This document shows, one piece after another, positions 28,638-56,858 of a stretch of 64,000 nucleotides of DNA (positions are counted from its first letter, which is position 1; every line of letters begins with the position of its first letter). The stretch is from assembly GCF_032444005.1 (NCBI RefSeq), contig NC_091288.1, positions 215,636,001-215,700,000 on the forward strand, in the 5' to 3' direction. The stretch comes from Ranitomeya imitator (Eukaryota). Below the pieces are notes generated by a model. That model was not told the origin of the DNA. It made no database searches and worked only from the letters and a program-made list of their open reading frames with translations. The position numbers were made by a program, and so were the translations under genes.

Positions 28638-31600
28638 ATGTATTGTCCAAAGACCGGGGGGTTTAAGATGGCGAATGCGTCTTTATCTCCGTGGCAGATC
28701 GTTACTGAATACTACCCGGGTCGCACTTTGGGGAACATCAACAACGGAATCCAGAGAGTCCTCCTGCAAGTCTTCGGGATGCTCGGTCAAGGGAAATCGT
28801 CGCTCATTAATTCTTGCCTGTGTGTAATGAAGGGCGGAGGATACAACAACACGGCGCCTTCTGGCTCAAATCATGGAGGAATGACGATAGAGAGAAAGGA
28901 ATTTGAACTGACAAACCATTTGGTGATGATCGATAACCGGGGGTTCAACAAGCTGAATCCAACGGAGGTGCTAGAGATGAGCGCCCAGTTCAGTAAGTAT
29001 TCAGAAAGCGCCTAAAAGGGGTTAGGTGGCACCTCTCACATCCGCATCTGGAGGTGATACATGTTATACATGTCACATCTATAACTGGCAGGTATGTGCA
29101 GACGTCATGTCATCGTCACCACTCACTTCTACATCTGGAGGTGAGCAGCACCGATCATGTCACATCTACAGTCATGGCCAAAATTTTTAAAAACGACACC
29201 AAAATTCTATTTTCACATGATCTGCTGCCCTCTGGTTTTTATTAGTGTTTGTCTGATGTTTATATCACATACAGAAATATAATTGCAATCATATTATGAG
29301 TACCAATAGGTTATATTGACAGTCAGAATGAGTTAATGCAGCAAGTCAATATTTGCAGTGTTAACCCTTCTTCTTCAAGACCTCTGCAATTCTCCCTGGC
29401 ATGCTCTCAATCAACTTCTGGACCAAATCCTGACTGATAGCAGTCCATTCTTGCATAATCAGTGCTTGCATTTTGCCAGAATTTGTTGGTTTTTGTTTGT
29501 CCACCCGTCTCTTGATGATTGACCACAAGTTCTCAATGGGATTAAGATCTGGGGACTTTCCAGGCCATGGACCCAAAATCTCTATGTTTTGTTCCATGAG
29601 CCATTTAGTTATCACCTTTGCTTTATGGCAAGATGCTCCATCATGCTGGAAAAGGCATTGTTGGGCGCCAAACCGCTCTTGGACGGTTGGGAGAAGTTGC
29701 TCTTGGAGGACATTCTGGTACCATTCTTTATTCATGGCTGTGTTTTTAGGCAAGACTGTGAGTGAGCCGATTCCCTTGGCTGAGAAGCAAACCCACACAT
29801 GAATGGTTTCAGGATGCTTTACAGTTGGCATGAGACAAGACTGGTGGTAGCGCTCACCTATTCTTCTCCGAATAAGCTGTTTTCCAGATGTCCCAAACAA
29901 TCGAAAAGGGGATTCATCAGAGAAAATGACTTTGCCCCAGTCCTCAGCAGTCCACTCCCTGTACCTTTTGCACAATATCAGTCGGTCCCTGATGTTTTTT
30001 CTGGAGAGAAGTGGCTTCTTTGCTGCCCTCCTTGAAACCAGGCCTTGCTCAAAGAGTCTCCGCCTCACAGTGCATGCAGAAGCACTCACACCAGCCTGCT
30101 GCCATTCCTGAGCAAGCTTGGCACTGCTGGGAGTCCGATCCCGCAGCTGAAACAGTTTTAAGATACGGTCCTGGCGCTTGCTGGTCTTTCTTGGGCGCCC
30201 TGGAGCATTTTTAACAACAATGGAAGCTCTCTCCTTGAAGTTCTTGATGATGCGATAGATTGTTGACTGAGGTGCAATCTTTGTAGCTGCGATACTCTTC
30301 CCTGTTAGGCCATTTTTGTGCAGTGCAATGATGGCTGCACGTGTTTCTTTAGAGATAACCATGGTTAACTGAAGAGAAACAATGATACCAAGCACCAGCC
30401 TCCTTTTAAAGTGTCCAGTGATGTCATTCTTACTTAATCATGACTGATTGATCGCCAGCCCTGTCCTCATCAACACGCACACCTGTGTTAATGGATCAAT
30501 CACTAAAACGATGTTAGCTGCTCCTTTTAAGGCAGGACTGCAATGATGTTGAAATGTGTTTTGGGGGTTAAAGTTCATTTTCTGGGCAAATGTTGACTTT
30601 GCAAGTACAGTAATTGCTGTTAACCTGATCACTCTGACATTCAGGAGTATATGCAAATTGCCATTAGAAAAAATGAAGCAGTAGACTTTGGAAAAATTAA
30701 TATTTGTCTCATTCTCAAAATTTTTGTCCATGACTGTATAACTGGCAGGTATGTGCAGACGTCATATCATCATCACCACTCACTCCTACATCTGGAGGTG
30801 AGCAGTACCGATCATGTCACATCTATAACTGGCAGGTATGTGCAGACGTCTTGTCATCGACACCACTCACTCCTACATCCGGAGGTGAGCAGTACCGATC
30901 ATGTCACATCTATAACTGGCAGGTATGTGCAGACCTCATGTCATCAACACCACTCACTCCTACATCTGGAGGTGAGCAGTACCGATCATGTCACATCTAT
31001 AACTGGCAGGTATGTGCAGACGTCATGTCATCGGCACCACTCACTCCTACATCTGGAGGTGAGCAGTACCGATCATGTCACATCTATAACTGGCAGGTAT
31101 GTGCAGATGTCATGTCATCGACACCACTCACTCCTACATCTGGAGGTGAGCAGTACCGATCATGTCACATGTATAACTGGCAGGTATGTGCAGACGTTAT
31201 GTCATCGTCACCACTCACTTCTACATTTGGAGGTGAGCAGTATGGATCATGTCACATGTATAACTGGCAGGTATGTGCAGACGTCATGTCATCGACACCA
31301 CTCACTCCTACATCTGGAGGTGAGCAGTACCGATCATGTCACATGTATAACTGGCAGGTATGTGCAGACGTTATGTCATCGACCCCACTCACTCCTACAT
31401 CTGGAGGTGAGCAGTACCGATCATGTCACATCTATAACTGGCAGGTATGTGCAGACGTCATGTCATCGACACCACTCATTCCTACATCTGGTGGTGAGCA
31501 GTACCGATCATGTCACATCTATAACTGGCAGGTATGTGCAGACGTCATGTCATCGTCACCACTCACTTCTACATCTGGAGGTGAGCAGTATGGATCATGT

Positions 31601-34600
31601 CACATGTATAACTGGCAGGTATGTGCAGACGTTATGTCATCGACCCCACTCACTCCTACATCTGGAGGTGAGCAGTACCGATCATGTCACATCTATAACT
31701 GGCAGGTATGTGCAGACGTCATGTCATCGACACCACTCATTCCTACATCTGGTGGTGAGCAGTACCGATCATGTCACATCTATAACTGGCAGGTATGTGC
31801 AGACGTCATGTCATCGTCACCACTCACTTCTACATCTGGAGGTGAGCAGTATGGATCATGTCACATGTATAACTGGCAGGTATGTGCAGACATGATGTCA
31901 TCGTCATCACTCACTTCTACATCTGTACTGTTGATGTCGTATGCACAATCATCAGGTAAGTAAAGCAGAAACTCTCCAAAATCCTCCTAAAAAATGCAGT
32001 TTCCCCCCAGTTTCCGCTCCATAAGCTCTGCAAAAACTCACACCCTTAGGCTATGTGCAAACTGATTTTTTTTTTACGTAATCAAAAATGTCAAGTTTTT
32101 TTATGTGAACAATTTTAGAACACTCTCTTCTGAAGAGTCAAAAAAAACACCGGTGGGGAATAGCGCAGAACCCACCACTTCCACTAATTTGTCAGGGAGA
32201 TGTTACTTAGCTGCCTCCAATCAGGACAATTATGCAATTGACTGATGAGTGATGGACTAGGCCAGGGCTGGTTCCACTACTAGGCCGGTGTTTGGGAAAC
32301 TCACAGTGAGCATATGGTATATACACCTCCAATTCCAACACAAGGAATATATACATACATGCCCCGCTACGGTCACTGCCAACTCTGCAATAACAGAAAG
32401 AACTACTCGCTGCCACCACCAATCATTTATACAGGCTGATTGGAAGCCTGTTATATGTAGCGTATGGCTTCAGGGGTGCGGTTTACAGAGCAAGAGGAAC
32501 AAAACTAATACATTTTATATCTGTAATCCGGAAAAGTAGGCAGCGTTTATAAAAAAATATACAAAGATGATATAAAATGGGAAAAAAACAATGCGGTATA
32601 TACAATCACATGCAATAAAAGGGATGACAAAAGAAAAGTACTAAACCTCTGTCACAGAAATAGATCAGCGCTTAGTGGAGGGAGGTACTCCTTAGGAAAA
32701 TGGACAGAACCTACAGCAAGCTATACCTTAGCCTAACTAATGACCAAACTCAAACTCTGATTTTTATTAGATCAAGGTTACGCCCACATACCTCCCCTTG
32801 GTGAACTCATATGGGGGCTGGTCGTCGGATGTGCTTGGTCTTTTGGAAGTTTATGAGATGCTCAACTTTCAGGATATCTTCACCCCTGAAGGTCCCAGGC
32901 AGGAGATATGGTTGTCATGTTTCTTATCACCATTTTACCTTTCTATAGAGATGAAACATGCAAACCATAGCATCATCCATCTGGTCAATATTAAGTTAGA
33001 AGTGTTAGAATGGCCTTACAGTGATGTAAGTGATTGTTCATCATTTCACTACGACACAGAAAATATATCTCCTATAAATATCAGATCGATGCAAACCCCA
33101 ATATTCATCATTGGCCCAGAAGGTCTGAGATAATTACTTTGAACAGGGGAAGCTGATTCCTTTGAAGAGAGGAAGCCGCTGTACTTTTCTGTCTATGAGT
33201 ATACGAATCCTAGGCTTGTTGGCTGGATCTCATCAGATCCCCCTGTGAAGTCTCAGCTCTTTCTCACTTCCCCAGTTTAAACTAATCCATTATGATCAAT
33301 GTGAGGGTATTTTGTCCGCTCTCTGGAGATGTCTTTGTGAATTTTACTATATTTTCTCTACGACATTGAGTTTTTGGAGGAAATGTTAGATTTCTGAAGC
33401 AGTTTTGAAAAGATTATATTTTTCCTGAAGTGTTTTTGCAGCTTTTTAGTTGGACAGTGCCTAGTTTGAAGCTACTTCAAAGAAGTGACCTGCAGTTCCT
33501 ATTTTCCCAACAGGCATTTTTCAAAACCTAAAGTGAAAAAAAACCTCAAAAGACTGAACATGTGACCAGAAAAGTGGTTGTACTATAGAAACCTATGTGC
33601 ACATGGAGCTTTTCAAGCAGAAACTGATAGAAAACTCCAAATTCTCATCTAAACCACAAAACTCCTCAAAAACGTTGAGTTTGCGCTCAGTTTCTGCTCC
33701 AAAAACTCAACAATTTTTGAGCAATTTTTCAGGCATGATTTTGGAGTGGACTCTCAAAAAACTCTGTGCACATAATTTTAGGGTGCAGAACTGTCAAATT
33801 TGCTTGTAAATTTGTTGTGTCCAAAGTTGGCCTTGTATTCAGGGAAACCCCAGTAACATATAGGAAAGCTGAAGACCAGCTCTGCTATCAGACGGGTATT
33901 GGAGAGTGGCCGATAACTCGTCACTAATGTAGAAGAAAGTTGACTCCGACATCACCTGTCTATTCTCCCATTAGGGCATCTTCGGGAATTGGGGAAAGTG
34001 ACCTGGACTGGAATATCCATAAGAGAAGCTTACAGAGTATATAAAGAAGAGCAAAGAAGAGAACCCACAGATCTTGTGGTCCCTGTGTTTGTACATAGGT
34101 AAGTTTTTTTTTTTTGCAATAATCAAATTTTTTTACTTTTATTTTTTTACTCAATGAACGGAGACATAGTGAATATCCAGAATAATCCCACACTGTAAGA
34201 AACAGGTGAGAATCACAGACCAGGATGTTATTATTATACATTTTTAAAGCCGCTGTTCACACTTTTCTGATTCTGATTGGAATGTGTCATTAGAAAATAA
34301 TTGACTGTTAGGGTTTTGTGTTTCTTTTTTTTTTTAACATTTCTGGCAATTTATTTTATTATTCTTAATACTAGATGGTGGCCCGATTCTAACGCATCGG
34401 GTATTCTAGAATAGTATATAGCACAGGCCACGTAGTATATAGGAGCCATGTAGTATATAGCAAACAAATACTACATGGCCTGTGCCATGTGGCTGCTATA
34501 TACATACATATTGTAGAATACCCGATGCGTTAATACAGGCCACGCAATATATAACAGTGGCCACACAGTATATAACACAGCCCACACAGTATATAGCAGC

Positions 34601-37600
34601 CACGCAGTATATAGCAGCCACGCAGTATATAACACAGGCAACGTAATATATTGCACAGCCTACGCAGTATATGGCAGCCACGTAGTATATAACACTGCCC
34701 ACGCAGTATATAGCAGCCATAGTATATAACACTGCCCACGCAGTATATAACAGTGGCCACGTAATATATAGCACAGTCCACGCAGTATATAACACAGCAC
34801 ACGGAGTATATAACACTGCCTATGTAGTATATAGCAGCCATGCGGTATCTAACACAGCCCACGCAGTATATAACACAGGCCACACAGTATATAACACTGG
34901 CCACGTAATATATAGCACAGCCCACGCAGTATATAGCAGCCACGTAGTATATAACACTACCCGCGCAGTATATAACACAGCCCACGGAGTATATAACACT
35001 GCCTATATAGTATATAGCAGCCACGCGGTATCTAACAGCTCACGTAGTATACAGCAGTGTGGGCACCATATCCCTGTTAAAAAAAAAATTATTAAAATAA
35101 AAAATAGTTATATACTCACCCCCTGGGATCCACCGAAGCTCTGGCGATACGGGCGTGGCTGACGCCATCTTCCGTTCCCAGGATGCATTGCGAAATTACC
35201 CAGATGACTTAGCGGTCTCGTGAGACCGCTAAGTCTTCTGGGTAATTTCGCAATGCATCGCCGGGAATGGAAGATGGCGGCAGGCGCGAGCGGCTCGGCG
35301 GACTACGGAGGGTGAGAATAGCAGGTTTTTTGTTTTTTTATTATTTTTAACATTACATTTTTTTTACTATTGATCCCGCATCAATAGTAAAAAGTTGGGG
35401 ACACACAGGTTTTTGTTTTTTTTTGATTCAAAAAGATTTTTATTAAGAATAACAATATAATTGACATATTACATTCTTGTTTTCAATAGGGGACACACAG
35501 GGTTAATAGCAGCGGTTACGGAGCGTGTTACCCGCGGCATAACGCGGTCCGTTGGGGAGTATGCGGTCATCGGGCACTGACTGCGGGGAGTAAGGAGCGG
35601 CCATTTTCTTCCGGACTGTGCCCGTCACTGATTGGTCGCGGCTGTTTTGCTGCGACCAATCAGCGACTTGGATTTCCATGACAGACAGAGGCCGCGACCA
35701 ATGAATATCCGTGACAGACAGACAGAAAGACGGAAGTGACCCTTAGACAATTATATAGATTATTAAAATGCACATTAAAATGCACAAATTTGTATCCTTG
35801 CAATTATCACATTGGCCACTGGGGCAATTTTAGAATGATACTTCTTGACTTTTCAGAAGTCACATTGTCATTAAAGGCAGGATTACAATGGCAGGTAACA
35901 CCTTTATACACAGGATCCACCAATCACAATAGGTGGTTACAGCTGATGCTTCACAATGAACTTTGCACTTGCTCATTAGATGCTTCAATACAAAAGATAG
36001 GGGCGGAGTCTCCTCATTGCTGCTAATTTAAATGTGCATTTCCTGAAACAGCAAGAAGTTAGAGCAGTGTTTCCCAAACTCCAGTCCTCAAGGACCCCAC
36101 AGGTCATGTTTTCAGGATTTCCTTAGGATTGCGCAAGTAGTGGAAGTTTCATCAAGGCATCAGGAATTGATTCATCTGTGCAACACTATGGAAATCCTGA
36201 AAACGTGACCCGTGGGGTCCGTGAGGACTTGAATTTGGGAACTACTGAGTTAGACAATAAAAAAAAAGTCCCAGTGGCCGGTGCGAGAACTGCAAGATTT
36301 TGACTTAAAAAAAATATATTTTTGTGCTAAATCTTATATATTTCAAGAGTAGGCCATTTCCTAATTATAAATTCCCTTTAAGTTACATTTAGACGGGACC
36401 ATTTTGGCCCATAACAAGCACCAGCAGGCTACAGTATATACGTACTGATTAGCACTTATTGGCAGAGGAGAAATTATGGGAACATATTGGAACCTAATAT
36501 GATCATTCTGCGCTCATATAGCACCATTTTATCGGCAGCACATCCTCTGTGTATACCAATAATCATGATTTTTATGCCACATAAACCATCCAATCACCTG
36601 ATAAATGAGTGTTTTGACCTTTTCGTCAGGTGATCGCTGACTTGATCAATGATCAGGAACTAGCACTCTTACGAAAGCTGGTTTGGCAATTGTAGTCTCA
36701 GGTTGTCGCACCTTTAGTTCTATGTTCTACGCCGTTCTCGCACTCATCCCGCAATGTTCTCGCGCTGCAGACGCCTTTCCTGAATTACGGTTATTTATGA
36801 GAAGTGATTCGCTCCTCGGTTATTTTTTTTTAGCATATTTTACTTTGATTGAGCAGAATGTGTCTGAAAGGAAACATTTTATTTCAGCTGCAAAACGGTC
36901 TGGGATGAAAATGCTGAGAAGTTACTAGCAGAGGTTTACAGCATCACGGGTAGGTGACCACTTTGCGGTTTTTGGTTAGACCTTCTTAGTAGATGGAGTG
37001 ACGGTCAATATCACAGGTAGGTGTCCAAAACTCGATGATGCCATACAACATGGCTGCCAGAATGCAACATTGCACTACATCCCTCATTTCCAACTCCTCA
37101 TATATCTAGGATTACTTCTTCTTCATAACCAGTAGGGTCTATATTCATAGGAATACCTATAACCATGGAATAATTTTTTTCCTGGTGATTTCTTTGTAGT
37201 TTTGATTAATTTCTGAGATAGGAAGTAGCCGGCTGATATCTACCGCTATCAGCCATATAAACTTTTTATTTTAGCGGCCGTCTTCGGCTCGGTCTCGAAC
37301 CATGGCGACTTGATGAAAGAAGAATCTGTAGGAAGATCGATCTTGTGCAGCCTAGATAGGTCCACCAGGGTCTTCTCCGCTGTTATCTTGATAGTTTTCA
37401 GCCATCGGATTGCTGGTGTTCCTCTTCGCCGTGCTCCTTCTATTCTTCTGACCATGATGTCCTTCTCCAGTGATTACGCTATAAGCTACAAGGACAAATT
37501 CCTCTGTCACTCGGCCACCCAGAAGTTCTTCTCTGTTCCTTTCTTCAATTCTGCCTGGCAGTCAAGCACAGTGATAAAACTGCACGCTTCCTATAAAGCA

Positions 37601-38342
37601 CTGCCAAAGAACAAGAGAAGTGTTGTCTGGGGGAAAAAAAAAAGATCTCGACAGAGGGAGGAAGGAGCTAACTTCTCGTCCTACTGGTTCTCAAGAGAAA
37701 AATAAACAGAAATAACTGTATTGGAAGGGCGTAAAACAACGGGACCTTTATTGGGGGGTGTAGTATGCAGACATTGACCCCATATCATAACTTAGAGGTC
37801 CTAGTCCATCACGATTGCTAGTTAGTGAGTCTAGAACAAGAAATATTTTTCATTTTGTCTTTTCTTCCTTTCATTGGTTTCCCAATTATTTGTTCATCCC
37901 AGTAATTTACCTGATCTCCATGGAGGGTAGGATGGTCCCAATTATCTTTATAGGTATCGTATTTTTACTCTTCTTGAAGCCAGATCCATTCCACTATGAG
38001 ATTTTTTTTGTACTTACAGGAATTCACCCAATCATTGTCATCACACACTCGTCCTCCAAGAACTGTGGCGAATTTATTGAAAAGTTGAAAAAGTTAAAGT
38101 CAACTCACTTTATCACGTTGGAAAACTACACTGAGAAAAACCCAAAACCAAACCCCGAAATTGATGGCAAAATCGTGGAGTTCCTACAGACGTGCATTAA
38201 AGAAGCAGAGTCCAGAATTAAAAAGATGTCGGAAGAAGATCCATCTCAGAGAATAGTTCAACAGACAACTCAGCAGGTTAATGAGGAGGCAGCAAAAGTG
38301 AAGGAATCACGTGATCGACTGCAGAAAGTTCTGAGGAAATAG
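28638..38342 (+). CDS. IFI44/IFI44L-like P-loop GTPase without a TLDc domain, copy A (287 aa, 4 exons)
   Basis: Exons 28638-28992, 33975-34098, 36888-36949 and 38020-38342 join with consistent phases (864 nt). G1 GMLGQGKS, G3 DNRG, VFVH, GIHPIIVITH and LENY match the IFI44-family C-terminal domain pattern; in-frame TAG 9 nt upstream of the ATG. Confidence 0.82.
29169..30736 (-). mobile_element. Full-length Tc1/mariner element of the DD35E (Traveler-like) class
   Basis: TA TSD on both sides; TIRs CAGTCATGGCCAAAA / TTTTGTCCATGACTG; 1568 bp; single transposase ORF. Confidence 0.93.
29361..30362 (-). CDS. Tc1-family transposase, DD35E, 333 aa, stop 5 codons before the likely native end
   Basis: MVISKETR..., GRPRK, FSDES, FQHDG and [11 protein letters not shown]; 35 residues between the second D and the E; KKKG-TAA-HCKY-TGA. 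Confidence 0.9.
   Translation of the reverse strand: MVISKETRAAIIALHKNGLTGKSIAATKIAPQSTIYRIIKNFKERASIVVKNAPGRPRKTSKRQDRILKLFQLRDRTPSSAKLAQEWQQAGVSASACTVRRRLFEQGLVSRRAAKKPLLSRKNIRDRLILCKRYREWTAEDWGKVIFSDESPFRLFGTSGKQLIRRRIGERYHQSCLMPTVKHPETIHVWVCFSAKGIGSLTVLPKNTAMNKEWYQNVLQEQLLPTVQERFGAQQCLFQHDGASCHKAKVITKWLMEQNIEILGPWPGKSPDLNPIENLWSIIKRRVDKQKPTNSGKMQALIMQEWTAISQDLVQKLIESMPGRIAEVLKKKG
34371..35759 (-). mobile_element. Non-autonomous Helitron with an internal ~21-bp minisatellite (copy A only)
   Basis: Minus strand starts TC and ends with hairpin CCCGAT-GCGTTAGA-ATCGGG then CCACCATCTAG; inserted between A and T; absent at the matching site in unit 2 (~54480). Confidence 0.82.
35410..35488 (-). 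mobile_element. Short poly(A)-tailed retroposed fragment inside the Helitron
   Basis: 13-bp direct repeat GGGGACACACAGG on both sides; minus strand has AATAAA followed by an A-rich tail. Confidence 0.65.
36065..36247. mobile_element. hAT-type MITE (copy A only)
   Basis: TSD AGTTAGAG / AGTTAGAC; related to 15339-15500; empty site at ~54765 in unit 2. Confidence 0.85.
37249..37490 (-). mobile_element. 3' fragment of an RTE-clade LINE
   Basis: Translation SLEKDIMVRRIEGARRRGTPAIRWL resembles the RTE C-terminal SLEKxIMLGKIEGxRRRGRPxxRW motif; duplicated at 55766-56010. Confidence 0.75.
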
Positions 38343-39989
38343 AGAAGTTCTGAAGGAACAGGTTATAAACCAGAGAAGCTAAGATAGCGGAAAAAAAGGA
38401 CATTGAGCTTTTGCCTGTTGCAAGTGAGGCTTTATTTGTAGCTCGCTGTTGTGATACTTTCCTAGTCTTTTTCGCCAATTGTAACTTTTGATTCTTTTCT
38501 TTGCAAAAAATAAAACAAAACATTCACTTTTGGCCAAGATTTGTAGCCTTTAATACTTATCTTGGAGAGCATATCTTCTTTTCGATGCGACGCCATCAGT
38601 CTCCACCACCAGCTAGGTCCTGTTCAGGTTTGTGTGTGTTTTTTTACACTGCTGGACGTTTACATTTGTATGTCACAAAAAAGGTGTTCAAACGTAATCA
38701 TTGGCGCAAAGGTGGTTAAAAAATGATTACCGTCGACTAGGTTTGATTTAGACATATGCTTTTTTTTTTAGAGAACACGCAGTAAATGCACCAGTCATGC
38801 ATTATTCTCAGGATCTATCTTCAGGAGAGCACCGCTCCTCTGCCTCCTGCTTGCCGGGAGTCAGTGGGCTTCGGATGACTGACAGTTCGGCTATACGGCA
38901 AGGTTGAGCCGTTGGTCCAAACAGTGCACCCTTCCATGCTGCAAGAAAACCCCTTTAACTGTCTATGGCATATTTCCCTGGTGTTACATCACACATGTTC
39001 ATTGTCGCTTGGCAGAGCCGTCTGCATTGATACAATGGGAATTTTCTTCCTGTAGTTTCCCCTTAAGTCCAGGGGAAAAACTTCTGCTCTTAATGTATAT
39101 TTAGTACAGAGAAGCTTTCACTATAATCCCAAATTTTTACAATCCTTGATGGAACTGTACAATGGATGTGACAAGAGGAATGATATTTAGAAGAACAGAT
39201 GATGAGCACCTGTAGAACAGAGAAGAAGGGGTAAATGCAGAGGTACCAGATCATTTTCACTTTCGCTCTGGATGTTTCCAGTAAATATATTTGTGGAATT
39301 TGTTCTGGGTGTGGTGGCAAGATAAAGGGCGTTATAAAAAAATATCTGCAGGTTGCGGTCAGACTTCTACAATTCTGTTTCTGGAGAAGCTGGGTGGCCA
39401 ACAGCACAAAGAATAATAAGCGGAAAAATCCCTACATTTTTTTTATGAATCCTATAAAAAAATTAATGAAATCAGCACTTTGAAGTCGAAGAAGTACAAT
39501 TTGGCCTTGGTCTCCCTACTGCTGGACCCCATGGCGGTGCCCATCACTCTGATCTCCAGCCTATATATATCACTGTTGTAATGTCATTTTCTAATGAAGA
39601 CTTGTCCAAAATGTAAGATAGTTAAATTCCAAGTCAATCTGTGTCTCAACCAAGAGCAAAACTACAACTTCCAGCAGATCCTGGCAGCCTATGGTTGTAC
39701 ATTATATTAAAGGGAATAACTAAATGAATGACAGTTAGCTCCCGGTGTCTTCTGTGGTGATTTTCATCGGTCAACACTAAATAGGAAGATGATGATGAAA
39801 CTCATGGTTTACAGGAATCAAATATATAACATTCAGAAGGTAAAAATACATCAAAGGCTATAGCCAAATAATACTGCCTGCTGTGCACAAGGATATAATT
39901 ATACTGACTCCTGTGGACAAATATTGATACTTTAATACTGGACACAGATATAGCTACAATAAAATAATTGCTTATGACGTTATTCTCTT

Positions 39990-41005: not shown

Positions 41006-41010
41006 AATAT

Positions 41011-44975: not shown

Positions 44976-45989
44976 GGTAAATAAATATGTGTATCTTTTA
45001 TGTCTGCAGCAAAAATCAGAATAATTTACAGCGCCATAGAGCAAAGTATAATCCCTTCAGCATTTTCTTAAAATACACTCCATGTTCTTGGGCTATAAGG
45101 GGTTCAGTACTGGATTGGTGCTGTGGATTCGGGGTGCGCTATTTAATCGGGAAAATACAATTTTCCTGCCACAGACCTGGTGATCCGTCCTATCCTACTG
45201 GTGACAGATGATCAAACATTCTGGATTAGACAGAAGTAAATAATTATAGCCATATGTTTGCGGTTTTCCTCATTTTCACTGCATTTTCTCACACCTCAGC
45301 TCTTTTTTCAGATTCTGTCCACCTTTTAGAGGATGTGGTGTTGTTGTTTTTTTTAGAATATAAATGGATGTATAAGAAAATAGTCAGTGCTGCTTTGTTC
45401 AGTGATCGATCTTTATTGCAGTTGCAGCTCCATTTTTTGGACACAGAATCTTAAAGTATAATTTTTTGTGCCTGCAGTCACCACTAGGGGGAGCACACTG
45501 CATACGTGAAACTTAATAACAGTCTGCAGTGAGCAGCCGCCATTGGAACAATCTGAACCCCCCTTACCTACCGTAACTATTGAAAAATGTGAAAAAAAAA
45601 ATTAAAAACAAAAATACATAAACGTAAAAGTTTTCATCATCATGCTTTTCCCCAGATGCAAATAGTGAAATAAAATCTAAAAATATTTTGATAAACGTAA
45701 TGGAGTGATGCTGTAATGCTGCGGACACCAAACTTAAATTAAGTTGAACGAATCTGAGCAGCAATTCCACACACAACCTGTAGACAGGGGTGGCGCTGTT
45801 TTTTTGAAAGGAGAACCAAAGATCAGGGACATGGCATATGAACCACTGTATCTGAATTATGAGGTTTCCCTTTAAATGCATTTTTCTGTCCTCGAATAAT
45901 CTGCTGATCTCTTCTCCGCCTTTTTTTTTCCAAAGTTACTTTCACTTTTGAAACTGAAAGCATTGGAGCAGCTTCAGCTTTAGCTGACC

Positions 45990-48900
45990 ATGTATTGTGC
46001 GAAGATGGGGGGGTTTAACATGACGAATGCTTCTTCATCTCCGTGGCAGATCATTACTGAATACTACCCGGGTCGCACTTTGGGGAACATCAACAATGGA
46101 ATCCAGAGAGTCCTCCTGCAAGTTTTCGGGATGCTCGGTCATGGGAAATCGTCGCTCATTAATTCTTGCCTGTGTGTAATGAAGGGCGAAGGATACAACA
46201 CGGCGCCTTATGGCTCAAATCACGGAGGAATGACGATGGAGAGAAAGGAATTTGAACTGACAAACCATTTGGTGATGATCGATAACCGGGGGTTCAACAA
46301 GCTGAATCCAACGGAGGTGCTAGAGATGCGAGCCCAGTTCAGTGAGTATTCAGAAAGCGCCTAAAAGGGGTTAGGTGGCACCTCTCACATCCGCATCTGG
46401 AGGTGATACATGTTATACATGTCACATCTATAACTGGCAGGTATGTGCAGACGTCATGTCACCGTCACCACTAACTTCTACATCTGGAGGTGAGTAGTAT
46501 GGATCATGTCACATCTATAACTGGCAGGTATGTGCTGACGTCATATCATCGTCACCACTCACAGCCGCATCTGGAGGTGAGCAGCACGGGTCATGTCACA
46601 TATATAACTGTGTTGTGAATTCTGTGGCAGAGCTCCCTCCTGTGGTCACAAGTGGTACTTCGGCTGATTCTCTCTGGGAGCTTCCGTTTGTGGAGGAAAG
46701 TGGTACAGCGGCTTCTGAGTTTCCTCCCTCAGGTGATCTGGTGAGGTCGTTAGGTGCTTCTCTACTTAACTCCACCTAATGCTTTGATCCTGGCTTCCTG
46801 TCAATGTTCCAGTGTTGGACTTGCTTTTCCCTGGATCATTCCTGTGGCCTGCTGCTCTGCATAGCTAAGTTCTTCTTTGCTATTTGTTTGCTATTTTTTC
46901 TGTCCAGCTTGTCTAATTTGTTGCTGGAAGCTCTGGGACGCAAAGGGTGTACCTCCGTGCCGTTAGTTCGGTACGGAGGGTCTTTTTGCCCCCTTTGCGT
47001 GGTTTTCTTTAGGGTTTTGTGTAGACCGCAAAGTTACCTTTGCTATCCTCGCTCTGTTAAGAAAGTCGGGCCTCACTTTGCTGAATCTATTTCATCTCTA
47101 CGTTTGTCTTTTCATCTTAACTCACAGTCATTATATGTGGGGGGCTGCCTTTTCTTTTGGGGTATTTCTCTGAGGCAAGGTAGGCTTATTATCTATCTTC
47201 AGGCTAGTTAGTTTCTCAGGCTGTGCCGAGTTGCATAGGCAGAGTTAGGCGCAATCCACGGCTGCCTCTAGTGTTGTTTGGAGAGGATTAGGGATTGCGG
47301 TCTGCAGAGTTCCCACGTCTCAGAGTTCGTTCTATGATTTTGGGTTATTGTCAGATCACTGTATGTGCTCTGACCGCTATGTCCATTGTGGTACTGAATT
47401 GCCTTTCATAACAGTACAGGAAGCCAAAAGTACTAATGATTCTCAATAGAGGGAAAAAAGAAGTTCTGAGACCATTTTTTTTTTCTTTACACTGTGTTTT
47501 GCCTTTTTTTCCCCCTAGACATTTGGGTGGTTCAGTACACAGGTGTGGTGATGGACATTAGAAGTCTGTCTTCATTTGTGGATCAGCTTGACATCTTCCG
47601 AGAGTACCTGGATAAATTCCTGATTGTGTACTTGGATGACATTTTGATCCTCTCGTACGATTGGGAGTCTCATGTGAAGCAGGTCAGAACAGTTTTTCAG
47701 GTCCTGCGTGCTAATTCTTTGTTTGTGAAGGGATCAAAGTGTCTCTTTGGTGTGCAGAAGGTTTCATTTTTGGGGTTCATCTTTTCCCCTTCTACTATCG
47801 AGATGGATCCTGTTAAGGTCCAAGCCATCCATGATTGGACTCAGCCGACATCTCTGAAAAGTCTGCAAAAGTTCCTGGGCTTTGCTAATTTTTATCGTCG
47901 CTTCATCTGCAATTTTTCTAGTATTGCCAAACCATTGACCGATTTGACCAAGAAGGGTGCTGATTTGGTCAATTGGTCTTCTGCTGCTGTGGAAGCTTTT
48001 CAAGAGTTGAAGCGTCGTTTTTCTTCTGCCCCTGTGTTGTGTCAACCAGATGTTTCTCTTCCGTTCCAGGTCGAGGTTGATGCTTCTGAGATTGGAGCAG
48101 GGGCTGTTTTGTCGCAGAGAGCTTCTGATTGCTCAGTGATGAAACCATGCGCTTTTTTTTCCAGGAAGTTTTCGCCTGCTGAGCGAAATTATGATGTAGG
48201 CAACCGAGAGTTGCTGGCCATGAAGTGGGCATTCGAGGAGTGGCATCATTGGCTTGAAGGAGCTAAGCATCGCGTGGTGGTATTGACTGATCATAAGAAC
48301 TTGACTTATCTTGAGTCTGCTAAGCGGTTGAATCCTAGACAGGCTCGTTGGTCGCTGTTTTTTGCCCGTTTTGACTTTGTGATTTAGTACCTTCCGGGCT
48401 CTAAAAATGTGAAGGCGGATGCTCTGTCTAGGAGTTTTGTGCCAGACTCTCCGGGTTTGTCTGAGCCGGCGGGTATCCTCAAGGAAGGAGTAATTGTGTC
48501 TGCCATCTCCCCTGATTTGCGGCGGGTGCTGCAAAAATTTCAGGTTAATAAACCGGATCGTTGTCCAGCGGAGAGACTGTTTGTCCCTGATAGGTGGACC
48601 AATAAAGTTATCTCTGAGGTTCATTGTTCGGTGTTGGCTGGTCATCCTGGAATCTTTGGTACCAGAGAGTTAGTGGCTAGATCCTTTTGGTGGCTGTCTC
48701 TGTCGCGGGATGTGCGTGCTTTTGTGCAGTCCTGTGGGATTTGTGCTCGGGCTAAGCCCTGCTGTTCTCGTGCCAGTGGGTTGCTTTTGCCCTTGCCGGT
48801 CCCGAAGAGGCCTTGGACACATATCTCTATGGATTTTATTTCTGATCTTCCCGTTTCTCAAAAGATGTCAGTCATTTGGGTGGTCTGTGATCGCTTTTCT

Positions 48901-51900
48901 AAGATGGTCCATCTGGTACCCTTGTCTAAATTGCCTTCCTCCTCTGATTTGGTGCCATTGTTCTTCCAGCATGTGGTTCGTTTACATGGCATTCCAGAGA
49001 ATATCGTTTCTGACAGAGGTTCCCAGTTTGTTTGAAGGTTTTGGCGAGCCTTTTGTGGTAGGATGGGCATTGACTTGTATTTTTCCTCGGCTTTCCATCC
49101 TCAGTCTAATGGCCAGACCGAACGAACCAATCAGACCTTGGAAACATATCTGAGATGCTTTGTTTCTGCCGATCAGGATGACTGGGTGTCCTTTTTGCCT
49201 TTGGCTGAGTTCGCCCTTAATAATCGGGCCTGCTCGGCTACCTTGGTTTCGCCATTTTTCTGCAATTCTGGGTTCCATCCTCGTTTCTCTTCAGGACAGG
49301 TTGAGTCTTCGGACTGTCCTGGTGTGGATACTGTGGTGGACAGGTTGCAGCAGATTTGGACTCATGTAGTGGACAATTTGACCTTGTCCCAGGAGAAGGC
49401 TCAACGTTTCGCTAATCGCAGACGCCGTGTGGGTCCCCGACTTCGTGTTGGGGATCTGGTTTGGTTATCTTCTCGTCATATTCCTATGAAGGTTTCCTCT
49501 CCTAAGTTTAAACCTGGTTTCATTGGTCCGTATAGGATTTCTGAGGTTCTTAATCCTGTGTCTTTTCGTCTGACCCTTCCAGATTCTTTTTCCATACATA
49601 ACGTATTCCATAGGTCATTGTTGCGGAGATACGTGGCACCTATGGTTCCATCTGTTGATCCTCCTGCCCCGGTTTTGGTGGAGGGGGAATTGGAGTATAT
49701 TGTGGAGAAGATTTTGGATTCTCGTGTTTCTAGACGGAAACTCCAGTATCTGGTTAAATGGAAGGGTTATGCTCAGGAAGATAATTCCTAGGTTTTTGCC
49801 TCTGATGTCCATGCTCCCGATCTTGTTCGTGCCTTTCATGTGGCTCATCCTGGTCGGCCTGGGGGCTCTGGTGAGGGTTCGGTGACCCCTCCTCAAGGGG
49901 GGGGGGGTACTGTTGTGAATTCTGTGGCATAGCTCCCTCCTGTGGTCGCAAGTGGTACTTCGGCTGATTCTCTCTGTGAGCTTCTGTTGGTGGAGGGAAG
50001 TAGTACTGCGGCTTCTGAGTTTCCTCCCTCAGGTGATCTGGTGAGGTCGTTAGCTGCTTCTCTACTTAACTCCACCTAATGCTTTGATCCTGGCTTCCTG
50101 TCAATGTTCCAGTGTTGGACTTGCTTTTCCCTGGATCATTCCTGTGGCCTGCTGCTCTGCATAGCTAAGTTCTTCTTTGCTATTTTTTCTGTCCAGCTTG
50201 TCTAATTTGTTGCTGGAAGCTCTGGGACGCAAAGGGTGTACCTCCGTGCCGTTAGTTCGGTACGGAGGGTCTTTTTGCCCCCTTTGCGTGGTTTTCTTTA
50301 GGGTTTTGTGTAGACCGCAAAGTTACCTTTGCTATCCTCGCTCTGTTAAGAAAGTCGGGCCTCACTTTGCTGAATCTATTTCATCTCTACGTTTGTCTTT
50401 TCATCTTAACTCACAGTCATTATATGTGGGGGGCTGCCTTTTCCTTTGGGGTATTTCTCTGCGGCAAGGTAGGCTTATTTTCTATCTTCAGGCTAGTTAA
50501 TTTCTCAGGCTGTGCCGAGTTGCATAGGCAGAGTTAGGCGCAATCCACGGCTGCCTCTAGTGTTGTTTGGAGAGGATTAGGGATTGCGGTCTGCAGAGTT
50601 CACACGTCTCAGAGCTCGTTCTATGATTTTGGGTTATTGTCAGATCACTGTATGTGCTCTGACCGCTATGTCCATTGTGGTACTGAATTGCCTTTCACAA
50701 CATAACTGGCAGGTATGTGCAGACGTCATGTCATCGTAAACACTCACAGCCGCATCTGGAGGTGAGCAGCACGGGTCATATCACATCTATAACTGGCAGG
50801 TATGTGCTGACGTCATGTCATCATCATCACTCACTTCTACGCCTGGAGGTGAGCAGCACGAATTATGTCACATCTATAACTGGCAGGTATGTGCAGACGT
50901 CATGTCATCGTCACCACTCACTCCTACATCTGGAGGTGAGCAGTACCGATCATGTCACATCTATAACTGGCAGGTATGTGCAGACATCATACTATCTTCA
51001 CCACTCACTTCTACATCTGGAGGTGAGCAGTACCGATCATGTCACATGTATAACTGGCAGGTATGTGCTGACGTCATGTCACCGTCACCACTCACTCCTA
51101 CATCTGGAGGTGAGCAGCACAGGTCATGTCACATGTATAACTGGCAGGTATGTGCAGACCTCATGTCATCAACATCACTCCTACATCTGGAGGTGAGCAG
51201 AACCGATCATGTCACATCTATAACTGGCAGGTATGTGCAGACGTCATGTCATCAACACCACTCACTTCTACATCTGGAGGTGAGCAGAACCGATCATGTC
51301 ACATCTATAACTGGCAGGTATGTGCAGACGTCATGTCATCTTCACCACTCACTTCTACATCTGGAGGTGAGCAGAACCGATCATGTCACATATATAACTG
51401 GCAGGTATGTGCAGACGTCATGTCATCAACACCACTCCTACATCTGGAGGTGAGCAGCACAGGTCATGTCACATGTATAACTGGCAGGTATGTGCAGACC
51501 TCATGTCATCAACACCACTCCTACATCTGGAGGTGAGCAGAACCGATCATGTCACATCTATAACTGGCAGGTATGTGCAGACGTCATGTCATCAACACCA
51601 CTCACTTCTACATCTGGAGGTGAGCAGAACCGATCATGTCACATCTATAAATGGCAGGTATGTGCAGAAGTCATGTCATCAACACCACTCCTACATCTGG
51701 AGGTGAGCAGCACAGGTCATGTCACATGTATAACTGGCAGGTATGTGCAGACCTCATGTCATCAACACCACTCACTTCTACATCTGTACTGCTGATGTCA
51801 TATGCACAATCGTCAGGTAAATGAAGCAGAAACTCTCTAAAGTCCTCCTAAAAAATTCTGTGTTTTCCCCCAGTTTCCACTCCAAAAACTCTGCAAAAAG

Positions 51901-54900
51901 GCTCACACCCTTAGTCTATGTGCAAACTGATTTTTTTTTTACGCAATCGAAAATGTCAAGTTTTCCTGTGTAAACAATTTTCGAAAACTCAAACAGGGAA
52001 ATAGGTACCGCGCTAGAATTATGGCCCAAACCAATATTGTTCACAACTGTCCCTCGTGGTAATATATCACAATCAAGGCTGCTAAGTCATAACTTCATAG
52101 ACAATCTAATAAAGGAAGCAGCTGTAAAGCACCACTGTAATGCTGCGTATAAGTAACACTAAATGACTTATGGACTATGTTTGGACAGCCCCTAAATACA
52201 AATGTACATAGGTGTTAGCACTAGATAGTACCGCGGTTATCCCAAATGCCTGCGTATAGTGACTATGCCCTTGATTTCACTGCCAATGCCACATAAACTT
52301 CTAGGCAAAATGTCTGCAGCAGAGCCAGTGTTTTACCTACTTGGCAACAAGTCAGGTCAGGCATTCGGACCTTGTGTCTTCTTCATAAAGCCCAGGTAGT
52401 GCGCAAATGGTCGTATTCCTCACTCCAGAGTCTGTACGATGAGTGCACAGAGCCGTGCAGTGCCAGAGACGCCCCGGCTGGCGCTACCGCTGGATTCTCG
52501 GAGAAAAAAAGGCGGGGAGGAGCGGCCGCTTACAGCGTGTGATGTCACTAGGCAAAGGAGCTTCGCTGGAGCCCTAAAATATATTTCCTATAAATATCGG
52601 ATCGATGCATACCCCGATATTGATTACTGACCACTGGCCCCGAAGGTCTGAGATAATTCGTTTGAACAGAGGAAGCTGATTCCTTTGAACAGAGGAAGCC
52701 CCTGTACTTTTCCGCCTCCGATTATAGGAATCCTAGGCTTGTTGGCTGGTTCTCATCAAATTACCTATTCACAGCAGGAGATCTTACTTCAAGGAGGGTT
52801 GAAGTCTCAGCTCTTTCTCACTTCCCCAGTTTTAGCTAATCCCTTATGTTCAATGTGAGGCTATGTGCACACGTACAGTTTTTTTCACGTTTTTTCGCGC
52901 TGAAAACGCTATAAAAACTCATTAAAAACGCATACATTATGCATTCTATCATTTAGAATGCATTCTGCATGTTTTGTGCACATGGATGCGTTTTTTTCCC
53001 GCGAAAAAAACGCATTGCGGTAAAAAATGAGCATGTTCATTATTTTTGCGGATTTTCTGCGTTTTTCCTCGCAATTCTATGCATTTGGGGAAAAAACGCG
53101 TCAAAATCGCGGTAAAAACGCATGCGGATTTCTGGCAGAAATGTCCGTTTTTTGTCAGGAAAATTTCTGCAAGAAATCCTGACGTGTGCACATACCCTAA
53201 GGGTATGTGTCCACGTTCAGGATTGCATCAGTATTTGGTCAGTATTTTACATCAGTATTTGTAGCCAAAACCAGGAGTGGAACAATTAGAGGAAAAGTAT
53301 AATATAAACATATGCTCCACTTCTGCATTTATCACCCACTCCTGGTTTTGGCTACAAATACTGATGAAAAATCCTAACCAAATCATGATGCAATCCTGAA
53401 CGTGGACACATACCCTTAGGGTAATACCTGAGGGTAATTTGTCCACTCTCCAGAGATTTCTTTGTGGATTTTACAATATTTTTCTCTACAGCATGGAGTT
53501 TTTGGAGGAAATGTTAGATTTCTGAAGCGGTTTTGAAAAGATTATAGTTTTCCTGAAGTGTTTTTGCAGCTTTTTAATTGGGCAGTGCCTAGTTTGAGGC
53601 TACTTCAAAGAAGTGACCTGCAGTTCCTATTTTTCTATTTTCCCAATGGACATTTTTCCAAACCTAAAGTGGAAAAAAAAACACTCAAAAGAATGAACAT
53701 GTGACCAGAAAAAGTGGTTGTACTATAGAAACCTATGGAGCTTTTCGAGCAGAAACTGATAGGAAACTTTGAGTTTGTGCTCAGATTCTGCTCCAAAAAC
53801 TCAACAATTTTTGAGTGATTTTTCAGACATGATTTTGGATTCTTAAAAAACTCTGTGACCACATCATTGTGAACTGTCAAATTTGCTTGTGAATTTCTTA
53901 TGTCCACATCATTGCTAGTAGGCCTTGTATTCAGGGAGGCCCCAGTAACATATAGAGAAGCTAAAGACCAGCTCTGCAATAAGACGGTTATTGGACAGTG
54001 GCCGATAACTCGTCACACACGTAGAAAAAAGTTATTAGTCCGACCTCACCTGTCTATTCTCCCATTAGGGCATCTTCGGGAATTTGGGAAAGTGACCTGG
54101 ACTGGAATATCCATAAGAGAAGCTTACAGAGTGTATAATGAAGAGGAACGAAGAGAACCCACAGATCTCGTCGTCCCTGTGTTTGTACATAGGTAAGTTT
54201 TTTTTTTTGTTTGTTTTTTTGCAATAATCAAATTTTTTTACTTTTATTTTTTTGCTCAATGAGCGGAGACATAGTGAATATCCAGGATATTCCCACACTA
54301 TAAGAACCAGGCGAGAATCACAGACCAGGATTTTGTTATTATTATTACACATTTTTAAAGCCGCTGTTCACACTTTTCCGGTTCAGATTTAAATGTGTCA
54401 TTAGAAAATAATTGACTGTCAGGGTTTTGTGTTTCATTTATTTTTTTTAACATTTCTGGCAATTCATTTTTATTATTACTATAATGCAAAAATTTGTATC
54501 CTTGCAATTTTCACACTGGCTGCTGGGGCAATTTTAGAATGATACTTATTGACTTTTCAGCAGACTAATTGTCATTAAAGGCAAGATTACAATGGCAGGT
54601 AACACCTTTATACACAGGATCCACCAATCACAATAGGCGATGTTACAGCTGATGCTTCACAATGAACTTTGCACTTGCTCATTAGATGCTTTAATACAAA
54701 AGATAGGGGCGGAGTCTATTCCTTGCTGCTAATGTAAATGTGCATTTCCTGAAACAGCAGGAAGGTAGAGAATAAAAAAAGTCCCAGTGGCCGGTGCGAG
54801 AACTGCAAGATTTCTACTTGAAATATATATAAGATTTAGCACAAATATATATATATTTTTAACAATAGGGGTAGGCCATTTCCTAATTATAAATTCCCTT

Positions 54901-56858
54901 TAAGTTGCATTTAAACGGGATCATTTTGGCTCATAACGAGCCCCAGCAGACTACAGTATATACGTACTGATTAGCACTTATTGGCAGAGGAGAAATTATG
55001 GGAACATATTGGAACCTAATATGATCATTCTGCGCTCATATAGCACCATTTTATCAGCAGCACATCCTCTATGTATACCAATAATCATGATTTTTATGCC
55101 ACATAAACCATCCAATCACCTGATAAACGAGCGTTTTGACCTTTTCATCAGGTGATCGCTGACTTGATCAATGATCAGGAACTAGCGCTCTTACGAAAGC
55201 TGGTTTGGCAATTGTAGTCTCAGGTTGTCGCACCTTTAGTTCTGTTTTACGCCGTTCTCGCACTCATCCCGCAATGTTCTCGTGCTGCAGACGCCTTTCC
55301 TGAATTACGGTTATTTATGAGAAGTGATTCTCTCCTCGGTTATTTTTTTTAGCATATTTTACTTTGATTGAACAGAATGTGTCTGAAAGGAAACATTTTA
55401 TTTCAGCTGCAAAACGGTCTGGGATGAAAATGTTGAGAAGTTACTAGCAGACGTTTACAGCATCACGGGTAGGTGATCACATTGCGGCTTTTGGTTAGAC
55501 CTTCTTAGTAGATGGAGTGACGGTCAATATCACAGGTAGGTGTCCGAAACTTGATGATTCCATACAACATGGCTGCCAGAATGCAACATTGTACTACATA
55601 CCTCATTTCCAACTCCTCATATATCTAGGATTACTTCTTCATAACCAGTAGGGTCTATATTCATAGGAATACCTATAACCATGGAATAATTTTTTTTCCT
55701 GGTGATTTCTTTGTAGTTTTGATCCTTTTCTGAGATAGGAAGTAGCTGGCTGATATCTACCGCTGTCAGCCATATAAACTTTTTATTTTAGCGGCCGTCT
55801 TCGGCTCGGTCTCGAACCATGGCGACTTTATAAAAGAAGAATCTGTAGGAAGATCGATCTTGTGCAGCCTAGATAGGTCCACCAGGGTCTTCTCCGCTGT
55901 TATCTTGATAGTTTTCAGCCATCGGATTGCTGGTGTTCCTCTTCGCCTTGCTCCTTCTAATCTTCTGACCATGATGTCCTTCTCCAGTGATTATGCTATA
56001 AGCTACAAGGACAAATTCCTCTGTCACTCGGCCACCCAGAAGTTCCTCTCTGTTCCTTTCTTCAATTCTGCCTGGCAGTCAAGCAGTGATAAAACTACCC
56101 GCTTCCTATGAAGCCCTGCCAAAGAACAGGAGAGGTGCTGTCTGGGGGAAAAAAAGATCTTGACAGAGGGAGGAAGTAGCTAACTTCTTGTCCTACTGGT
56201 TCTCAAGAGAAAAATAAACAGAAATAACTGTATTGGAAGGGCGTAAAACAACGGGACCTTTATTGGGGGGGTGTAGTATGCAGACATTGACCCCATATCA
56301 TAACCTAGAGGTCCAAGTCCATCACGATTGCTAGTTAGTGAGTCTAGAACAAGAAATATTTTTCATTTTGTCTTTTCTTCCTTTCATTGGTTTCCCAATT
56401 ATTTGTTCATCCCAGTAATTTACCTGATCTCCATGGAGGGTAGGATGGTCCCAATAATCTTTGTAGATTTCATATTTTTACTTTTCTTGAAGACAGATCC
56501 ATTCCACTATGAGATTTTTTTTGTACTTACAGGAATTCACCCAATCATTGTCATCACACACTACTCGTCCTCCAAGTACTCTGGAAAATGTATCGAAAAG
56601 TTGAAAAAGTTAAAGTCAACTCACTTTATCATATTGGAAAACTACACTGAGAAAAACTCAAAACCAAACCCCGAAACTGAGGGCAAAATCGTGGAGTTCC
56701 TACAGATGTGCATTAATGAAGCAGAGTCCAGAATTAAAAAGATGTCGGAAGAAGATCTATCTCGGAGAATAGTTCAACAGACAACTCAGCAGGTTAATGA
56801 GGAGGCAGCAAGACTGAAGGAATCACGTGATCGACTGCAGAAAGTTCTGATGAAATAG
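45990..56858 (+). CDS. IFI44/IFI44L-like P-loop GTPase without a TLDc domain, copy B (287 aa, 4 exons)
   Basis: Exons 45990-46341, 54069-54192, 55407-55468 and 56533-56858 (864 nt, phases consistent); G1 GMLGHGKS, G3 DNRG; paralogous to copy A throughout. Confidence 0.82.
46611..50702 (+). mobile_element. Ty3/Gypsy chromovirus-type LTR retrotransposon, internally deleted
   Basis: LTRs 46611-47413 and 49911-50702 (TGTTGTGAA...TTCAyAACA); TAACTG duplicated on both sides; G-rich PPT before the 3' LTR; pol remnants YLDDILI (RT), EVDAS / TDHKNL (RNase H), GHPG..C..C and SDRG (integrase), EYIVEKILDSR..YLVKWKGY (chromodomain). Confidence 0.95.
47551..49791 (+). pseudogene. Defective gag/pol fusion of the Gypsy element
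   Basis: Gag-like start MDIRSLSSFVDQL joined in frame to mid-RT DIFREYLDKF; in-frame stops at 48385-48387, 49033-49035 and 49789-49791. Confidence 0.85.
52858..53428. mobile_element. Two adjacent PIF/Harbinger-type MITEs plus a 10-bp remnant (copy B only)
   Basis: TGA|GGCTATGTGCACACG...CGTGTGCACATACCC(53197)|TAA|GGGTATGTGTCCACG...CGTGGACACATACCC(53415)|TTA|GGGTAATACC|TGA; empty site AATGTGAGGGT at ~33300. Confidence 0.85.
55766..56010 (-). mobile_element. RTE-clade LINE 3' fragment (duplicate of 37249-37490)
   Basis: Same translation with few substitutions. Confidence 0.75.

Follow-up and report, generated by a model that had tools for sequence, protein, structure and literature searches.

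IFI44 and IFI44L were described by Busse et al. as proteins that carry a G1 motif of the form GXXXXGKS and a DxxG motif followed by Leu, and the G4 motif was (N/T)KxD in IFI44L and incomplete in IFI44. In oyster, IFI44L has been reported to consist of a TLDc domain and an MMR_HSR1 domain, and 19 ifi44 genes have been reported in zebrafish. Here we analyzed a window of 64,000 nucleotides (nt) of the frog Ranitomeya imitator (contig NC_091288.1), which contains no runs of N. An earlier interpretation made from the letters of this window (the sequence-only reading) had proposed a pair of intact, fast-diverging, TLDc-less IFI44-like GTPase genes, which we call gene A and gene B. We consider, with moderate confidence, that A and B are two working tandem-duplicate genes under weak constraint, and that they belong to an unnamed G-domain family that is expanded in frogs.

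A self-comparison of the window by blastn showed a tandem segmental duplication, in which ~28109-41011 and 45468-59926 are matched by collinear blocks of 86-94% identity. A word search returned two annotated proteins of R. imitator and one of Dendrobates tinctorius, which were mapped back to obtain the gene models. The public annotation of both R. imitator genes is "G domain-containing protein", with 287 amino acids (aa) each. The duplication units and the exons are as follows.

28109-41011, plus strand: duplication unit 1, which carries gene A, defined by the collinear blastn blocks to unit 2
28638-28992, plus strand: gene A exon 1, with the start codon, the P-loop GQGKSS, the G2 Thr83 and the G3 DNRG, placed by mapping and by the loose end of a contig from run X1 joined to exon 2
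33975-34098, plus strand: gene A exon 2, placed by mapping and by the joint 34098/36888 in contigs of four runs
36888-36949, plus strand: gene A exon 3, placed by mapping and by the joint 36949/38020 in contigs of three runs
38020-38342, plus strand: coding part of gene A exon 4, with the G4-like THSS, ENYT, two long helices and the stop codon TAG
38343-38532, plus strand: gene A 3' untranslated region (UTR), placed by contigs, with AATAAA at 38509 and contig ends at 38524-38532
45468-59926, plus strand: duplication unit 2, which carries gene B, defined by blastn, with a non-coding divergence of 5.6-5.9% from unit 1
45990-46341, plus strand: gene B exon 1, in which the Asn70 codon is absent, placed by mapping
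54069-54192, plus strand: gene B exon 2, placed by mapping
55407-55468, plus strand: gene B exon 3, placed by mapping
56533-56858, plus strand: gene B exon 4, with an extra Tyr codon and THYSSS, placed by mapping

Both genes have four exons, all introns are bounded by GT..AG, and each coding sequence is 864 nt long (287 codons and a stop codon). The exons of A and B were joined solely for codon statistics; searches were conducted exon by exon, and where full-length products were needed, the public alleles P0001 and P0003, which differ from A and B at three and two residues, respectively, were used as stand-ins. The models bear out several parts of the sequence-only reading. Both copies are intact, with open frames of 287 aa, and the one-codon indels compensate for each other: Asn70 (AAC) is missing from exon 1 of B, and Tyr (TAC) is added after His190 in exon 4 of B. 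The in-frame stop that had been seen upstream is also present in both genes, as a TAG 9 nt before the ATG. The neighbours of the locus are CD19 and a gene for a Rab5-bind protein.

To date the duplication, the orthologous loci of other frogs were compared. The loci of D. tinctorius (L001) and Phyllobates terribilis (L003) each contain one ortholog, next to the Rab5-bind gene that also flanks A and B, and no second copy was found within 10 kb downstream in these two loci. In the phylogenetic tree, A and B are sisters with a support of 0.99, within a dendrobatid clade with a support of 1.0. The non-coding divergence between A and B is 5.6% (5.6-5.9%), as against 12.7-13.5% to D. tinctorius. Given the sister placement of A and B, the lower non-coding divergence between them and the single copy in the outgroups, the duplication is specific to the Ranitomeya lineage and is younger than the divergence from Dendrobates. 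With D. tinctorius as the outgroup, both indels fall on the B branch. For a relative in Mixophyes, no neighbouring-gene context was obtained.

Next, we considered what kind of protein the two genes encode. Both contain a G1 motif (G47-MLGQ/HGKS54), an intact G2 Thr and a G3 motif (D99-NRG-F103). K53, S54, T83, D99 and G102 are invariant or near-invariant across the family alignment, and all invariant columns of the family blocks FG..G.GKSS.INS, DNRG, TG..P..V.T and ENYT are kept in A and B. Gene A departs from the family at codon 51 (28788-28790), in the P-loop: it encodes Gln there (GQGKSS), whereas His is found in B, in the two outgroups and in 98% of family members. An AlphaFold2 model built with 112 family sequences scored 88.7 for pLDDT (the predicted local confidence) and comprised a G domain at residues ~40-225, followed by long helices at 226-250 and 255-286, in agreement with the helical tail that had been predicted. 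In a Foldseek search with this model, the top matches were GIMAP2/7, EngB, Toc34 and IIGP1; there were 266 matches with E<=0.001, and those listed were all GTPases. VIA-align gave Z scores of 12-13.6 to many G-domain families, all tied, so that in these fold searches no single G-domain family stands out for the model. Together, the G1-G3 motifs and the predicted fold assign A and B to the P-loop G-domain proteins of the TRAFAC class.

At the G4-equivalent position, gene A has T189-H-S-S and gene B has T-H-Y-S. The sequence-only reading was therefore right that the Asp of this motif is missing. However, because the commonest G4 form in the frog family is LTHKTS, which also has no Asp, the absence characterises the frog family as a whole and not this pair in particular. 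The cnidarian and sea urchin relatives have (I/L)TH-x-D at this position, and this form looks like the older state. IFI44 itself has TH-V-D at G4, like these invertebrate members, and the resemblance serves as a lead rather than a test.

We then searched for the family to which A and B belong. Word searches gave 16 and then 356 relatives, with E-values of 1e-41 to 1e-164 for the frog proteins. Among the matches listed, 120 of 120 were from frogs, and all but two were uncharacterized, hypothetical or unnamed; the other two carried chance names. A full profile search of 1.84 billion proteins gave 443 representatives with E<=0.001, of which 200 had E<=1e-10 and 105 had E<=1e-30. Names were checked for 30 relatives out of the best 150 of these 443, and 24 were scanned with Pfam. 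The relatives looked up include stand-alone members in the elephant shark, sharks, sea urchins, crinoids, Hydra and Clytia. Judged by similarity over the full length (alignments A1 and A2), A and B belong to an old metazoan G-domain family without a name, and the lineage-expanded family that had been proposed agrees well with these numbers. Known families gave little at the level of sequence. Pfam scans of single exons and of 15 full-length members gave solely sub-threshold matches to MMR_HSR1, RsgA and URGCP, and no PDB sequence reached an E-value below 0.019 in a profile search. We also searched the literature for this G-domain family, and for the fusions of frog guanylate-binding proteins (GBPs) described below, and found nothing relevant.

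These results bear directly on the possibility that A and B are TLDc-less members of IFI44/IFI44L whose rapid divergence is driven by diversifying selection and whose nucleotide specificity may have changed. Several features fit it. The G1 GxxxxGKS and the G3 DxxG followed by a hydrophobic residue conform to the motifs of Busse et al., in which the G4 of IFI44 is also incomplete, and to these may be added the TH-x-D lead, the weak MMR_HSR1 matches beside the domain composition of oyster IFI44L, and the expansion of ifi44 in zebrafish. However, no protein named IFI44 was found among the 120 best word-search matches or the 30 profile relatives looked up, and members of the family are named 'uncharacterized' by NCBI. 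By our estimate, 443 representatives in 1.84 billion proteins is a smaller number than would be expected if the IFI44 families of vertebrates, fish and molluscs were among them. TLDc was found in none of the 24 relatives scanned by Pfam, and A, B and the 15 family members gave no TLD match. The N-terminal extensions of the cnidarian and sea urchin relatives also gave no TLDc by Pfam at E<=10; they consist of acidic low-complexity sequence and are not globular. In A and B there is no place for such a domain, as the open reading frame starts 46 residues before the P-loop, the TAG lies just upstream, and only ~69 nt precede the ATG in a transcript contig (see below). Thus, the proteins are indeed TLDc-less, but no search linked them to IFI44/IFI44L, and the locus beside CD19 and the Rab5-bind gene is not an IFI44-type position. 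On what was tested, the profile searches place A and B in a different family, which is unnamed. We therefore regard IFI44/IFI44L membership as unlikely, although the family may be remotely related to the IFI44 G domain.

The domain is not always found alone. Among the relatives looked up, proteins of bichir (named "CD276 antigen homolog"), sturgeon and sea urchins consist of immunoglobulin (Ig) V-set and C2-set domains followed by the G domain. The Ig-fusion proteins (P0244, P0251, P0252, P0230, P0254, P0227, P0256 and P0258) resemble B7/butyrophilin-like proteins, and their G domain is located C-terminally, where butyrophilins carry B30.2. In addition, seven frog proteins from seven species (P0140, P0161, P0173, P0146, P0148, P0188 and P0202) contain GBP_C residues 1-205 and then the G domain; five of the seven also have the GBP N-terminal G domain, and for four the source record gives the name guanylate-binding protein. 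Residues 510-693 of the Bombina "GBP3" match residues 37-218 of P0001 with 37% identity (E 7e-32). At the Bombina bombina locus L005 (58804-58884 and 61228-61571), the G-domain exon opens at a splice acceptor and has no start codon of its own, and because of this arrangement we consider that the fusion is built into the gene. A search for a GBP gene in the 64-kb window gave none. Furthermore, a CaaX box (CAIL, CRVM and CSIL are examples) forms the C-terminus of 46 of the 120 family members listed (38%; P0007-P0120), which suggests that these members are prenylated. The CaaX box is absent from A, B, the rest of the dendrobatid clade and the Mixophyes sisters, and we read this absence as a loss.

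To see whether the genes are transcribed, we compared positions 33000-38900 with Logan contigs from four sequencing runs, each of a different study. The labelling of these runs as RNA was a guess, and their metadata are coded and do not state the conditions; the RNA content is shown by contigs that skip introns. The joint 34098/36888 occurs in all four runs and the joint 36949/38020 in three, both with GT..AG ends. The loose end of the X1 contig corresponds to the final 22 nt of A exon 1, and the contigs stop shortly past the AATAAA. Gene A is thus transcribed and spliced. One contig of 1137 nt has 424 nt before exon 2, namely the 355 coding nt of exon 1 and ~69 nt, and because only these 424 nt precede exon 2, there is no room for a TLDc-coding exon. 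Runs X1 and X3 each contain a second contig over 38086-38231 with seven differences from A. Since this is exactly the number of A-B differences in that interval, gene B is probably expressed too. The transcripts whose absence would have refuted the sequence-only reading therefore exist for A, and probably for B.

The X1 contigs also showed a mixture of the two copies. The sole exon-2 contig of X1 has B-type letters at 34039, 34045, 34052 and 34055, yet it runs into an A-type exon-1 end. When the region 33975-34096 was compared in runs X1, X3 and X7, the change 34055 A>C was fixed in X3 and X7. The mixed letters could be due to gene conversion between the copies, divergent haplotypes or chimeric contigs.

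Upstream of both start codons, a motif scan detected the interferon-stimulated response element (ISRE). The consensus RRAANNGAAASY has four matches in the 64-kb window, three of which lie 29-52 nt upstream of the start codons of A and B.

28586-28597, minus strand: ISRE consensus (AAAAGTGAAAGT), at -52 to -41 relative to the gene A start codon
45938-45961: a pair of neighbouring matches to the ISRE consensus ahead of gene B, at 45938-45949 (minus strand) and 45950-45961 (plus strand)

The element is also present in D. tinctorius (at -53) and in both copies of a second R. imitator assembly, with a near-match in P. terribilis, and the Mixophyes relative has a separate ISRE match at -150. This distribution suggests that A and B are controlled by interferon regulatory factors (IRFs) or interferon.

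We also examined the divergence of the two copies. Between A and B, 31 codons are replaced and 10 are purely silent, and the ratio is 15:2 in exon 4; these counts are identical to those of the sequence-only reading. However, the skew in exon 4 is within chance (binomial test against the neutral 0.76, p=0.19; exon 4 against the other exons, p=0.15). The pairwise ratio of nonsynonymous to synonymous substitution rates (dN/dS, or omega) is 0.64-0.92, depending on the method. We then fitted models with our own GY94/F3x4 likelihood script on the four-taxon tree ((A,B),Dtin,Pter), with the following results.

One-ratio model: omega 0.70; against omega=1, 2dlnL 3.84, p=0.05 (borderline)
Post-duplication against background branches: omega 0.68 against 0.71, p=0.93
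A branch against B branch: omega 0.48 against 1.00, p=0.31

The high dN/dS that had been noted is thus real, and the coding sequences of A and B are under weak constraint, with an omega of ~0.7 that was already present on the pre-duplication branches. The diversifying selection proposed along with it did not fare as well. It is favoured by the comparison of replaced and silent changes, as 31:10 between the copies exceeds the 5 replacement and 6 silent differences found within A and B between two public assemblies, but the McDonald-Kreitman test, with two haplotypes per gene, only leans to adaptive divergence and is not significant (p=0.07-0.16). Omega never exceeded 1, and the branch tests on the four-taxon tree gave no signal of faster protein evolution after the duplication. 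Positive selection on A and B is neither shown nor excluded. Replacements affect 2 of the 54 most conserved columns and 25 of the 216 others, a difference that is not significant (p=0.13). Five replacements and the Tyr insertion fall within ten residues past G4 (residues 190-200; 38046-38078 and 56559-56594), mostly on the B branch, and within this cluster Cys/Phe199 of B is polymorphic between the two assemblies.

An alternative to continued function is that redundancy freed B, or both copies, from selection, so that B is drifting to a pseudogene and the high dN/dS reflects relaxation. The omega of the B branch is consistent with this, as are the two indels on that branch and the 13 of its 15 unambiguous codon changes that alter the protein. 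The coding divergence between A and B (5.2%) is close to the non-coding value (5.6-5.9%). The open frame alone proves little, as the probability that one copy has no stop after 25 neutral changes is 0.35, and the absence of stops is weak evidence overall (P=0.16). Furthermore, the remains of a third, inactivated paralog are located between A and B.

42177-42551, plus strand: relic of a third, older paralog, exon-1-like piece only; best match P0071, 61% identity

The best match of this relic is an Engystomops protein, and a TGA at 42462-42464 replaces the Arg of DNRG; in the other R. imitator assembly the Arg is kept and a frameshift follows a few codons later. No later exons of this paralog were found in a search up to gene B.

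The indels, however, argue against drift. The aligned non-coding DNA of A and B contains 34 indel events in 4262 nt, 21% of them multiples of three. At the intron rate, 6.9 indels would be expected in the coding sequence; two were seen, both of 3 nt. No frameshifting indel is present in either copy, against ~5.5 expected (P=0.004 under neutrality). Thus, selection still removes frameshifts in A and B, and pure pseudogene drift is unlikely. In addition, B keeps all splice sites and all family-invariant residues, two runs contain a second contig with exactly the number of differences of B, the difference in omega between the A and B branches is not significant (p=0.31), and an omega of ~0.7 predates the duplication. 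We therefore consider loss of selection on B, or on both copies, to be distinctly improbable.

Taken together, these observations can be arranged as follows. A tandem duplication of ~13 kb in the Ranitomeya lineage, after the split from Dendrobates, gave A and B, and both copies probably still work. Each copy encodes a cytosolic P-loop protein of 287 residues, in which a TRAFAC-type G domain (G1 GxxGxGKSS, G2 Thr, and G3 DNRG with a hydrophobic residue next to it) precedes the tail of two helices. The family extends over cnidarians, echinoderms, cartilaginous fish, bichir and sturgeon, with hundreds of genes in frogs, and in other species its domain is fused behind guanylate-binding proteins or Ig-type ectodomains. 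We infer that A and B may bind nucleotide and, by forming dimers or oligomers, serve as switches in cell-autonomous immunity, driven by the IRF/ISRE promoter element. Because the frog branch has swapped the Asp of G4 for Ser or Thr, these proteins may not share the base specificity of classical GTPases.

Several points weigh against this picture. The GBP and Ig fusions occur in other species and implicate A and B through guilt by association, and A and B also lack the CaaX box. Expression of B is read from contigs with a matching number of differences (7 in 38086-38231) rather than from a full read-out of the letters. The evidence for nucleotide binding is the motifs, and A departs from the family at P-loop position 51, with Gln in place of the near-universal His. 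The evidence for interferon induction is the promoter motif, and should the ~69-nt leader prove collinear with the genomic DNA, then the ISRE would lie inside the 5' UTR, which is unusual. In addition, gene B could be losing function, because its omega is 1.0 and five changes and an insertion have accumulated just after G4.

Taken by itself, the A/B pair is ordinary: a recent tandem copy of a weakly constrained gene that had already been annotated. The family is more interesting than the pair: it is a conserved small G domain, unnamed and present in hundreds of frog copies, that recurs in fusion with recognised immune modules (GBPs and Ig V/C ectodomains), and some members, including A and B, have an interferon-type promoter element. 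A bolder proposal is that the family constitutes an undescribed class of immune-effector G domains, which would act as partners of GBPs (fused in at least seven frog species) and would form the signalling portion, on the cytoplasmic side, of B7/butyrophilin-like Ig receptors in fish and echinoderms, and which, with the change from TH-x-D to TH-x-S/T in frogs, may no longer be guanine-specific. This proposal is speculative, and we give it only a small chance of being correct as a whole. If the family is interferon-driven, then it would join the few families of vertebrate GTPases that are induced by interferon (Mx, GBP, IRG, GVIN and IFI44) and provide new candidate effectors for work on ranavirus and chytrid in amphibians.

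The introns and flanks of the two units also contain mobile elements and repeats. In intron 1 of A, 29361-30395 on the minus strand is an open frame of 344 aa for a Tc1/mariner-type transposase (HTH_Tnp_Tc3_2 and DDE_3), which is absent from B. In intron 1 of B, ~46596-50500 is the remnant of a Ty3/gypsy-type long terminal repeat retroelement with pol spread over three frames: the end of the reverse transcriptase and RNase H at 47494-48387, integrase at 48409-49035, and SH3 and a chromodomain at 49063-49791. Its flanks are near-identical, with the same open reading frame text at 46804-47211 and 50177-50500, and no gag, protease or full reverse transcriptase was seen in it. An array with a period of ~87 nt occupies intron 1 of both copies (30651-31963 and 50584-51824), and one with a period of ~35 nt lies downstream of both (39979-41011 and 58861-63896); the latter is much longer after B, with at least 5 kb up to the end of the window.

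Finally, we compared A and B with the known GTPase systems. They are like IFI44/IFI44L in the P-loop GxxxxGKS and in the DxxG with its following hydrophobic residue, features common to many GTPase families, and also in the ISRE-type promoter motif; an incomplete G4 is shared with IFI44, and multi-copy expansion in a lower vertebrate is known from zebrafish. They are unlike IFI44/IFI44L in having no TLDc, in showing no detectable sequence link in the searches run, and in their neighbours CD19 and the Rab5-bind gene. G3 is DNRG in every member of the A/B family, the long two-helix tail often ends in CaaX in this family, and the THSS/THYS of A and B differs from the (N/T)KxD of IFI44L.

The likeness to IRG/IIGP1 consists of a weak profile match to IIGP1 chains (E 0.26), a match of the relic paralog to Pfam IIGP (E 0.06) and a Foldseek match to 1tq6, and both are multi-gene, fast-evolving families; all IRG/IIGP sequence matches are below significance. 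Unlike A and B, IRG proteins have ~400 residues, and their G domain is flanked on either side by helical domains. The GIMAP/AIG1, Toc34 and septin-type GTPases, which belong to the dimerisation-activated TRAFAC proteins, share the hydrophobic residue past DxxG and a helical extension after the G domain; GIMAP2, GIMAP7 and Toc34 are among the top Foldseek matches of the model, and one sea urchin family member scored 25.8 bits on Pfam Septin, for which the cut-off is 26.2. However, Pfam AIG1, Septin and IIGP are below threshold for A, B and the frog family, and the VIA-align scores are tied over many unrelated G-domain families. For AIG1 (PF04548) in particular, A, B and the 15 members gave no match, and one GBP-fusion protein gave a sub-threshold score of 22.2 bits against 27.

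The A/B domain is not a GBP-type large G domain, as it gave no PF02263 match, and A and B are stand-alone proteins without CaaX and without a GBP gene in the window. Nevertheless, GBP1, GBP2 and GBP5 end in CaaX, as do 38% of the A/B-family members listed, and in seven frog proteins GBP_C residues 1-205 are joined to the A/B-type domain itself.

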